45,563 nt of DNA, taken from Octopus bimaculoides. Its lineage: Eukaryota. The notes beneath the pieces were generated by a model. The model did no database searches, had not been told where the DNA came from, and saw nothing but the letters and a program-made list of their open reading frames with translations. Location: contig NC_068983.1 in the NCBI RefSeq assembly GCF_001194135.2, positions 115,740,132 through 115,785,694 of the forward strand. The letters run 5' to 3'. This document shows, in pieces, positions 33,563-35,651 of this stretch; the first letter of the stretch is position 1, and each line of letters begins with the position of its first letter. A program made the translations under genes and the position numbers.

Positions 33563-33908
33563 TATAGGAAAGTGGGTTATACATCATTAGATGTATACCT
33601 GACTTTCCTATATAAAATTAAGAATATAACGGAACGCTGAACTCCAGACTATCAACTTAAACAACATTTATTCAGGTGGTAAATATATACATCTTTAGCT
33701 CTTGTTTGTTGTTACAGCTTCTGTGTGTGTGAGCATTGTTGTTGGGACGTTGGTATGTAGATGTAAGCGAGCTGTCGAGCGTAAGTTCAAAAGATGGAGG
33801 GAGACAGCTAAACACATCCATGCTCAATCGCTGGCCAACAAGAAAGAGACAGAATGAAGTGGGAAAGCTTGCTTGTTGAATTCCACGCATGCGCATGGCA
33901 TTACTACA
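33563..33908 (-). repeat. 3' LTR (346 bp)
   Basis: About 9 substitutions, one 1-nt indel and one 16-nt deletion relative to the 5' LTR. Confidence 0.9.
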
Positions 33909-33921
33909 GGGCTCCCTTGCC
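33909..33921 (-). other. putative polypurine tract
   Basis: Minus strand GGCAAGGGAGCCC abuts the 3' LTR TGT. Confidence 0.6.
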
Positions 33922-35151
33922 AGTGCGGAAACGCACGATAATATGAAATCTGCTGGAACGCCTGAGGCAGGATGGCCACTGAAAACCACCCACAAGATGT
34001 AGCACAAACACACACAAAGAAAAATCAAAGAAATGAATGTACACTTGTGAGATACATGCATACAATGTACATAACAAAACAACCGTGATGACAACTGTCC
34101 AGGAAACTGGAATCACGCGATGTAAAAGTCTGATTGTTTGTTTTCCCTGAAAGGAAAGAAAATATATGAGTGCACTAGTGTGTGTGTGAGAAAAAACACA
34201 GAACATAGTAAAAGTGTCTGTAGTATAGACTGCGAAAAGTCCCAAAACACTGAGATAGAGAAAACCAGTTCGTATTAAAATTCCACAAGGAGATAGAATG
34301 TCTGTACTCAGGAAGTCGTGGTNNNNNNNNNNNNNNNNNNNNNNNNNNNNNNNNNNNNNNNNNNNNNNNNNNNNNNNNNNNNNNNNNNNNNNNNNNNNNN
34401 NNNNNNNNNNNNNNNNNNNNNNNNNNNNNNNNNNNNNNNNNNNNNNNNNNNNNNNNNNNNNNNNNNNNNNNNNNNNNNNNNNNNNNNNNNNNNNNNNNNN
34501 NNNNNNNNNNNNNNNNNNNNNNNNNNNNNNNNNNNNNNNNNNNNNNNNNNNNNNNNNNNNNNNNNNNNNNNNNNNNNNNNNNNNNNNNNNNNNNNNNNNN
34601 NNNNNNNNNNNNNNNNNNNNNNNNNNNNNNNNNNNNNNNNNNNNNNNNNNNNNNNNNNNNNNNNNNNNNNNNNNNNNNNNNNNNNNNNNNNNNNNNNNNN
34701 NNNNNNNNNNNNNNNNNNNNNNNNNNNNNNNNNNNNNNNNNNNNNNNNNNNNNNNNNNNNNNNNNNNNNNNNNNNNNNNNNNNNNNNNNNNNNNNNNNNN
34801 NNNNNNNNNNNNNNNNNNNNNNNNNNNNNNNNNNNNNNNNNNNNNNNNNNNNNNNNNNNNNNNNNNNNNNNNNNNNNNNNNNNNNNNNNNNNNNNNNNNN
34901 NNNNNNNNNNNNNNNNNNNNNNNNNNNNNNNNNNNNNNNNNNNNNNNNNNNNNNNNNNNNNNNNNNNNNNNNNNNNNNNNNNNNNNNNNNNNNNNNNNNN
35001 NNNNNNNNNNNNNNNNNNNNNNNNNNNNNNNNNNNNNNNNNNNNNNNNNNNNNNNNNNNNNNNTTATCACTAGTTGTGTTGACTATGGTTGGAGATGTTG
35101 TTGGTCATTGTTGCTTGGTAGTTCAGTCTCCATGGCCGCATTTGTTCTTTA

Positions 35152-35287
35152 GTCGGGGTTCACCAGTTATAGGTTGGTAGTCCAGAATCCATGCTGCGTT
35201 TGTTTCTTCGTCGGGGTCACCACTTTATAGGAAAGTGGGTTATTGTAGCTCAGCGGGCTGCGTGTTCGAATCACGTCGGGGTCACCA
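35152..35287 (-). other. three tandem tRNA-Trp primer-binding-site copies
   Basis: TGGTGACCCCGAC at 35287 and 35222, and TGGTGAACCCCGAC at 35165. Confidence 0.88.
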
Positions 35288-35290
35288 CTT

Positions 35291-35651
35291 TATAAGAAAG
35301 TGGGTTATACATCTTAGATGTATACCTGACTTTCCTATATAAAATTAAGAATATAACGGAACGCTGAACTCCAGACTATCAACTTAAACAACATTTATTC
35401 AGGTGGTAAATATATACATCTTTAGCTCTTGTTTGTTGTTACAGCTTCTGTGTGTGTGAGCATTGTTGTTGGGACGTTGGTATGTAGATGTAAGCGAGCT
35501 GTTGAGCGTAAGTTCGAAAGATGGACGGAGACAGCTAAACACGTCCATGCTCAATCGCTGGCCAGCAAGAAAGAGACAGAATGAAGCGGGAAAGCTTGCT
35601 TGTTGAATTCCACGCATGCGTGAGACTACGCATGCGCACGGCGTTACTACA
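35291..35651 (-). repeat. 5' LTR (361 bp)
   Basis: Partner of 33563-33908. Confidence 0.9.

Follow-up and report, generated by a model that had tools for sequence, protein, structure and literature searches.

The closest described case to the element reported here is cqgypsy_1 of Culex quinquefasciatus, a member of the Osvaldo lineage of Ty3/gypsy elements in which CCA-bearing tRNA copies follow the 5′ long terminal repeat (LTR) and a 26-nt duplication of the LTR end flanks them, an arrangement that its authors interpret as a Twin-like insertion (PMC3286476). A second point of reference is the CsRn1 lineage, for which two published accounts list as hallmarks a tRNA-Trp primer-binding site (PBS), a CHCC motif in Gag and a GPY motif in the integrase (PMC2582038, PMC3630058), the latter also giving a 4-bp target-site duplication as typical of the group (PMC3630058). 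A third is the retroviral mechanism of plus-strand strong-stop synthesis, in which the primer tRNA is the template for the progeny PBS and copying normally halts one base before the 1-methyladenosine at tRNA position 58 (m1A58); without this stop extra tRNA sequence is added that is unable to pair after strand transfer, and lentiviral genomes retain complementarity to position 55 and so tolerate a second stop (PMC8599865). Here we describe an LTR retrotransposon primed by tRNA-Trp in Octopus bimaculoides, at positions 33563-35651 of a 45,563-nt stretch of DNA (the window; NCBI RefSeq assembly GCF_001194135.2, contig NC_068983.1, positions 115,740,132 to 115,785,694 of the forward strand), whose leader contains three tandem units, each of which appears by alignment to be an antisense copy of the tRNA-Trp body extending far beyond the PBS. 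Plus-strand strong-stop DNA normally includes no more than 18 nt from the 3′ end of the primer, and copying beyond position 58 is in the textbook view a lethal error. We consider it probable that this leader records just such accidents of reverse transcription, in which plus-strand synthesis read through primer tRNA-Trp and the product then re-invaded the U5 region of the LTR. As far as the arrangement of LTR end and tRNA sequence is concerned, cqgypsy_1 is a partial precedent.

All coordinates of the element are positions in the window, and the element lies on its minus strand. The units are referred to as U1, U2 and U3 with increasing distance from the 5′ LTR (the last is distinct from the U3 region of the LTR itself). 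The exact 14-nt sequence TGGTGACCCCGACG is present twice, against 0.04 occurrences per shuffled window when up to two mismatches are allowed in the latter. Both copies are part of a 35-nt block, composed of the terminal 18 nt of the LTR, an AAG spacer and the PBS, that is found at 35274-35308 and again 65 nt away at 35209-35243 with 34 of the 35 positions identical. At the sole variable base the internal LTR-end copy carries the variant of the 3′ LTR (C, not T), and it is therefore an element-derived copy. U1 is 65 nt long and the interval from PBS2 to PBS3 is 57 nt, with Tandem Repeats Finder (TRF) assigning U2 and U3 a period of 58 nt and 80% matches. No fourth unit is detectable by comparison with shuffles between U3 and the assembly gap at 34323-35063. 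The array lies within a gap-free stretch (35064-42105), its last unit about 50-90 nt from that gap, into which the array could continue.

Each unit was aligned in the tRNA sense (plus strand) to tRNA-Trp and compared with 500 shuffles; the 3′ 22 nt of the reference, TCAAATCACGTCGGGGTCACCA, are confirmed by a published table of 3′ tRNA fragments (tRF-3; PMC7555719). In U1, where the sequence at the tRNA 3′ end reads TCGAATCACGTCGGGGTCACCA, the 32 nt from the CCA end (35256-35287) match tRNA-Trp perfectly, and the alignment score of 70 compares with a shuffle mean of 16.3 and a maximum of 29. U2 aligns over 46 columns with a score of 39 (shuffle mean 15.1), and none of the 500 shuffles scored as high in either case. 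Similarity to the tRNA drops away from the LTR, with scores of 70, 39 and 27 for U1, U2 and U3, and the perfect match from the CCA end is 32 nt in U1 versus 14 nt in U2. The copies are partial and have internal deletions, and their tRNA origin rests on direct alignment. In every one of them the CCA end adjoins the spacer and LTR end, which is where the primer joins minus-strand DNA.

The relationships between the units are not uniform. Identity between U1 and U2 is bimodal, at 34/35 positions across the LTR end, spacer and PBS and no more than 21/37 in the part derived from the tRNA (Fisher p = 4.6e-5), which argues against a plain duplication with uniform decay. U2 and U3, on the other hand, have common differences from tRNA-Trp, and are therefore duplicates of one decayed unit rather than independent captures. 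The features of the element are collected in Table 1.

Table 1. Features of the tRNA-Trp-primed LTR element, as positions in the 45,563-nt window.
Feature	Position	Strand	Remarks
5′ target-site duplication ATAT	35652..35655	-	direct reading; same as 33559-33562
5′ LTR	35291..35651	-	361 nt; starts TGTAG, ends CTTATA; repeat search and alignment
Imperfect hairpin, 24-nt arms, at U5 end directly 5′ of PBS	35291..35339	-	83% complementary; last 49 nt of LTR
AAG spacer, LTR end to PBS1	35288..35290	-	direct reading
PBS1, exact TGGTGACCCCGACG	35274..35287	-	complement of tRNA-Trp 3′ 14 nt including CCA; motif search
U1 tRNA-derived stretch	35247..35287	-	41 nt antisense, about tRNA-Trp positions 35-75; 3 mismatches beyond the perfect 32
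Reiterated LTR end ATAACCCACTTTCCTATA with AAG spacer	35223..35243	-	18 nt LTR end + AAG = 21 nt; 5′ of PBS2
PBS2, exact 14-nt TGGTGACCCCGACG	35209..35222	-	motif search
U2 tRNA-derived stretch, decayed	35181..35222	-	includes anticodon-loop motif TCTGGA (sense TCCAGA)
LTR-end remnant CCTATAAC, degenerate	35166..35173	-	7/8 nt match LTR end + spacer; 5′ of PBS3
PBS3, degenerate TGGTGAACCCCGAC	35152..35165	-	1-nt insertion; direct reading
U3 tRNA-derived stretch, most decayed	35117..35165	-	paralogue of U2; score 27; 0/500 shuffles as high
Remaining leader up to gap	35064..35116	-	tRNA alignment scores no better than shuffles
Assembly gap, 741 N (estimated length)	34323..35063	.	inside element
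3′ internal region	33909..34322	-	414 nt; open for 138 codons from gap edge 34322
Polypurine tract, weak: AAGGGAG	33912..33918	-	7-nt purine run; ends 3 nt 5′ of 3′ LTR
3′ LTR	33563..33908	-	346 nt; repeat search and alignment
3′ target-site duplication ATAT	33559..33562	-	51 nt of flank before gap 33299-33511

The two LTRs are 97.6% identical over 331 aligned nucleotides, with a 16-nt indel near the start of the U3 region, and have the termini TG...TA rather than TG...CA within an imperfect terminal inverted repeat. The extra 16 nt, an insertion or a duplication, are present in the 5′ LTR only (35621-35636, minus strand) and fall within a palindromic GCATGCG-rich motif. We identify the flanking ATAT repeats as a target-site duplication with moderate confidence, as they comprise only 4 nt in AT-rich DNA (window GC content is 36.7%) and the 3′ flank is short. 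A hairpin at the end of U5 is found in both the minimum free energy and the centroid folds of the leader and is the only structure consistent across folds, the fold of the leader as a whole not being significantly stable (z = -1.4). Within the window there are neither further copies of the LTR nor a paralogous empty site. An initial annotation, made by inspection of the sequence, had described an LTR element with a tRNA-Trp PBS, an LTR end reiterated upstream of a second site, a third and degenerate PBS behind an LTR-end remnant, and decay of the units with distance from the LTR, and each of these is borne out by the data above. It had also regarded the LTRs, the ATAT duplication and the polypurine tract as intact, which is true of the LTRs and ATAT although the polypurine tract is a weak 7-nt run, and it had seen the units as LTR end plus PBS; the reiterations are real, but the units are not simply PBS motifs of 11-14 nt separated by filler, as they include the body of tRNA-Trp.

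The events that we envisage begin with a polymerase that would have passed the normal stop and continued into the tRNA body, at least as far as the variable loop (32 nt) and apparently into the anticodon region, leaving a 3′ tail for which the PBS copy on the minus strand offers no complement. This tail could then be rescued by re-invasion of the minus strand at a point in U5 some 20 nt upstream, so that the LTR end, AAG spacer and PBS would be copied a second time and the tRNA copy trapped between. The expected product has the order LTR end, AAG, PBS, tRNA copy, LTR end, AAG, PBS, with the newest unit, U1, adjoining the LTR. U2 and U3 would represent an older unit of this kind, already decayed when it was duplicated whole, through either template switching between repeats by reverse transcriptase (RT) or DNA slippage. 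Read-through of this sort would account for the junctions at the CCA end and at the LTR end, the perfect tRNA match of U1, the unit adjoining the LTR, and the base of LTR origin in the internal copy, and also for the bimodal identity of U1 and U2, because the LTR end and PBS would have been re-copied from the element and the intervening part copied fresh from the tRNA. An origin in aberrant reverse transcription, as the initial annotation proposed, is thus the best fit, but the generic re-priming that it invoked is replaced here by read-through of the primer tRNA in plus-strand strong-stop synthesis. Two intact 14-nt sites, with 32-41 nt of complementarity at the first, could offer alternative or stronger places for priming; nevertheless, the array is in our judgement probably a tolerated by-product rather than a demonstrated adaptation.

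Further support for read-through comes from unrelated eukaryotic contigs in which LTR end, spacer, Trp-PBS and tRNA remnant are likewise repeated. One scan of metagenome contigs of the Joint Genome Institute (JGI) for two Trp-PBS spaced 30-60 nt apart identified 12 loci, 11 of which are eukaryote-type leaders of the tandem design with 2 to ~50 units, and those that can be placed are insect-type. The remaining match (L010) is no LTR leader but a GC-rich 15-nt repeat and was set aside, and scans of IMG/VR for tandem PBS, for the AAGAAC leader and for the extended PBS gave no match in any of the three cases. Three contigs (L001, L009 and L019) contain one Ty3/gypsy family with three units and with protease, RT, RNase H and integrase, the relatives of the L001 integrase being in Lepidoptera, Hymenoptera, Coleoptera and mites; several fragments of insect JHBP genes lie on L013, a related contig. 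In L001 a (TA)n(TG)n microsatellite (oriented ~5150-5230) is present in the 5′ LTR and not in the 3′ LTR. Units of 27 nt characterize L002 and L006, which are related copies with four and three units, as well as L004, where three Trp-PBS are exact and four to five more are degenerate. The units are 31 nt long in L003, L005 and L011, with up to ~50 copies, and L012 has two units. Unit number differs between related copies, with at least five in L003 versus ~50 in L005. The array in L005 (oriented 1200-2640; also in L011) is made of ~50 tandem 31-nt units TGGTGACCCCGACGAAGAACACTCCATATAT, each comprising a Trp-PBS, a T-arm remnant and an LTR-end motif, and constitutes a PBS-derived minisatellite of ~1.5 kb.

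The closest structural analogue of the octopus element lies on the minus strand of L007 (12127-13926) and is a compact LTR element of 1.8 kb whose leader has three Trp-PBS. This leader runs from the LTR end CCCACA through TATATT, the PBS, a tRNA remnant extending to CAGACG (positions 26-31), CTCCACATATAAT and PBS2 to a degenerate third site, and its internal repeats are ~60 nt as estimated by eye. No gag or pol was recognisable in L007 on reading, without a domain search, and no clear target-site duplication was identified. We rejected L020 as its autonomous partner, since the two have in common only 46 nt of U5 end and PBS. L008 has three units, the tRNA copy of the first reaching to about position 41. 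In both L007 (52/40/29) and L008 (54/30/30) similarity to the tRNA drops away from the LTR, as it does in the window.

For comparison we used contigs fetched through relatives of the L001 integrase, which were not chosen for the presence of arrays, although some of their leaders are not upstream of the integrase queried. These provided five distinct Trp-PBS leaders, all with a single PBS; the sole array belonged to a further member of the L001 family, and in two more contigs no Trp-PBS was recognisable. Because these five leaders are single while 11 tandem leaders exist, the arrays are sporadic but recurrent rather than a fixed trait of a clade, with unit number varying within families. The prospect raised in the initial annotation, that a triple leader might be fixed throughout the clade, is thus met halfway, as such arrays are neither unique to this element nor a constant feature of its relatives.

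A short motif following the PBS recurs among these leaders. The 14-nt PBS, with (A)AGAA/GAAG directly after TGGTGACCCCGA(C/T)G, is found in L016 (14396), L020 (4156), the window (35195-35222), L007, L003/L005, L008 and L012. The CGACG-AAGAAC form is also present in leaders with one PBS, those of L016 and L020, and the motif may derive from an ancestral type of leader or represent a bipartite site in which the T loop is skipped. The loop-skipping unit of L007 also has the anticodon stem without its loop. Units of this kind would be predicted to base-pair with the mature tRNA in its stems and leave out the modified loops, which may reflect selection, shared ancestry or the behaviour of the polymerase. 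We also considered CGACG-AAGAAC as a scar of polymerase bypass at m1A58, which is doubtful as TGAT would follow the 14-nt site after a normal stop and leaders with one PBS have the motif as well.

The main rival to a tolerated by-product is that the array is a selected device, in which multiple or extended PBS would improve primer capture by a non-autonomous element competing for the RT of a helper, or would soak up 3′-tRNA fragments that target the PBS. Judged from the sequences this is rather unlikely, but several observations favour it. The loop-skipping units (14-nt PBS, AA, GAACACGCAGC) would base-pair along the two T-arm strands and bulge the modified T loop in the manner of a bipartite PBS, and contacts of the primer tRNA beyond the 18-nt PBS are used by Ty3 (bipartite PBS), Ty1 and HIV-1 (primer activation signal, PAS). 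U2 has decayed except in PBS2 and the LTR-end copy that precedes it, both still intact, CGACG-AAGAAC recurs after the PBS in U2 of the window, L007, L003/L005, U2 of L008 and L012, and the design is found both in a cephalopod and in insect-type contigs, among them that with the compact L007 element. Against this, most relatives have a single PBS, the decay of PBS3 and of the inner units looks neutral, the direct repeats of dual-PBS retroviral vectors are unstable in reverse transcription, and every extra PBS copy is an extra target for repression guided by tRNA fragments.

The array could instead have arisen at the DNA level, by tandem duplication of the PBS region through slippage or unequal exchange, either in the integrated element or earlier in its master copy, the likeness to tRNA then reflecting an ancestrally long PBS. 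U2 and U3 do look like a plain tandem duplication, with their 58-nt period, 80% identity and common differences from the tRNA, and the arrays of ~50 units in L005 and L011 are minisatellite-like. Duplication of whole units with uniform decay does not, however, predict the bimodal identity of U1 and U2 or a perfect tRNA match of 32 nt in one and only 14 nt in the other, nor unit borders that coincide with the LTR end and the tRNA CCA end in several unrelated families, and we regard it as an unlikely source of the array. An artefact of assembly or scaffolding, with units created or miscounted by a short-read assembler or LTRs of different copies joined across a gap, has a very small probability. 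The window does contain 12 gaps, the 3′ LTR is on an 811-nt island contig between two of them, and the array ends close to another, but because the array itself is in gap-free sequence and its exact repeats are short (35 nt, 65 nt apart) an artefact is unlikely, and the units differ from one another. The outer ATAT duplication moreover agrees on both sides, and the same architecture is seen in independent contigs of other organisms, with the L001 array being reproduced in L009 from JGI and in L019 from the European Nucleotide Archive (ENA).

A number of points nonetheless weigh against read-through of the primer as we have described it. ARAGORN detects no tRNA gene, and Rfam gives no tRNA match at E ≤ 10 for any of the units. 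Beyond the 3′ 22 nt the reference is what we take to be the vertebrate tRNA-Trp sequence, from which U1 differs at positions 38 and 43-44 and which may differ from that of octopus. The inner ends of all three units have in common the motif T(G)GTAG with YYCAG, and because of this the data also fit a version in which U1 may be a paralogue of U2 and U3 that had its outer 32 nt replaced by tRNA sequence in a later round. The degenerate unit of the L001 family is the one closest to the LTR, and the rule of the newest unit standing next to the LTR is therefore not universal. The strand-transfer steps themselves we infer from the finished leader. Finally, a protein-based search retrieved no other copy of the element carrying the leader, and the array may be either private to this copy or fixed in its family.

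The internal region is interrupted by the assembly gap, and the length of 2089 bp for the element holds only if the estimate of 741 N is right. That one element spans the gap is supported by the common orientation of the LTRs, their 97.6% identity and the matching 4-bp duplication. The 3′ LTR is on the island contig 33512-34322, which a gap bounds at either end. The gap within the element could conceal gag and pol, and the compact size, absence of ORFs and parasitic nature given in the initial annotation would depend on what it contains. No Pfam domain is found in the visible internal sequence (414 + 227 nt), and the 138-aa frame of the 3′ internal region has no integrase match. This frame stops at a TAG within the first bases of the 3′ LTR, and a stop-free run of 414 nt was matched in only 66 of 20000 composition-matched shuffles. 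A frame of 140 aa that spans the LTR has no protein match, and the listed open reading frames (ORFs) that cross the gap were set aside as artefacts in which N is translated as X. The sole homologue of the 138-aa frame is the Octopus bimaculoides protein A0A0L8HJQ2, with 63% identity over 60 aa, and there is therefore at least one other, diverged copy of the element family. The last ~60 residues of A0A0L8HJQ2 match the window at 33909-34149 (minus strand), the similarity beginning at a splice-acceptor-like ttcctttcag, and its N-terminal TGGGRGLG motif is presumably that typical of short-chain dehydrogenases. The last exon of this gene model is probably an exonised or mis-annotated copy of the internal region of the element.

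Taken more widely, and more tentatively than for the octopus locus, tandem units may be a recurrent and heritable outcome of tRNA-Trp primer read-through that arose independently in cephalopod and insect elements and records where the polymerase passed modified positions, in faithful units, or skipped them, in units that omit the T and anticodon loops, with non-autonomous elements perhaps retaining the extended or bipartite complementarity and the spare PBS for better primer capture; we consider this possible, although not probable. If so, such leaders would be natural in vivo records of the behaviour of RT on natively modified tRNA that can be read from genome sequence. They suggest that a read-through error can be rescued, inherited and become the seed of PBS arrays of 2 to ~50 units, which would give LTR elements a mechanism to change, lengthen or multiply their primer sites, and would explain some odd minisatellites in the 5′ untranslated regions of these elements. 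There is also a consequence for annotation, in that tools for finding LTR elements assume a single PBS and a copy of this family appears exonised in an octopus gene model.

Several other repeats are present in the window. A repeat of ~200 nt (CGTTTAACGTCCGCTTTCCATGCTAGCATGGGTTGGACG...GGCAGAGTTTCTACAGCTGGATGCC) is found at 16115-16311, 25311-25507, 43021-43216, 1153-1341, 41924-42102, 26750-26929 and other positions, giving 14 BLAST matches (13 besides the query) with 77-99% identity, a few of which are adjacent fragments of one copy. Its copies often adjoin assembly gaps and give rise to spurious MKPDGNTRLQSDLAEFLQLDALP ORFs, and it looks like a high-copy element resembling a short interspersed nuclear element (SINE) that breaks the assembly. 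A remnant of a mariner/Tc1-type DDE transposase (HDNARPH...PYSPDL) at 2266-2778 (plus strand) has a weak Pfam DDE_3 match (E = 2.5e-4, below the curated cutoff). A fragment resembling the RT of non-LTR elements at 41669-42088 (plus strand) has a weak RVT_1 match (E = 1.8e-3, below cutoff), and two more, at 24655-24720 (plus strand) and 6325-7365 (minus strand), were recognised by eye from translations, both of them cut by an assembly gap.

Comparison with known systems shows both what is familiar in this leader and what is particular to it. As in cqgypsy_1, a copy of a mature, CCA-bearing tRNA lies directly 3′ of the 5′ LTR, here the partial antisense copy of 41 nt in U1 that begins 3 nt after the LTR, and the LTR end is directly duplicated around tRNA sequence, over 18-21 nt here as compared with 26 nt in cqgypsy_1. 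The mosquito element, however, contains two complete, foldable tRNAs (Lys and Glu) placed head to head in one event (PMC3286476), whereas the octopus leader has partial antisense copies of its own primer, tRNA-Trp, arranged three in a row head to tail, none of which tRNA finders recognise. With the CsRn1 lineage (CsRn1, PwRn1, AgCR, CsRn1_Cv1 and Kabuki) the element has in common a tRNA-Trp PBS and a 4-bp duplication, ATAT, but no gag or pol is visible here. Term look-ups in the main text of publications on that lineage gave no mention of tandem PBS arrays, and no description of tandem LTR-end and PBS arrays was found in the searchable open-access literature, although this is weak evidence of absence. 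The terminal-repeat retrotransposons in miniature (TRIM), the large retrotransposon derivatives (LARD) and the cqUNK group of Culex are short and LTR-bounded, with a PBS, a polypurine tract and often internal tandem repeats but without recognisable gag or pol. The octopus element would be of comparable size (2.1 kb) if the gap estimate is right, and non-autonomous like them only if the gap conceals no gag or pol; L007, at 1.8 kb, has internal repeats. The tandem repeats of the known non-autonomous elements are internal and unrelated to the PBS, whereas here the repeat unit is the PBS with the LTR end. In engineered dual-PBS vectors both sites are used and the repeats are unstable, but those constructs are artificial, unlike the natural array described here. 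The step of reverse transcription concerned is the same one that m1A58 controls in retroviruses, where read-through adds tRNA sequence to the plus strand (PMC8599865). In the retroviral setting such read-through is described as a dead end, whereas in this octopus element its products have apparently been inherited, and repeatedly so.

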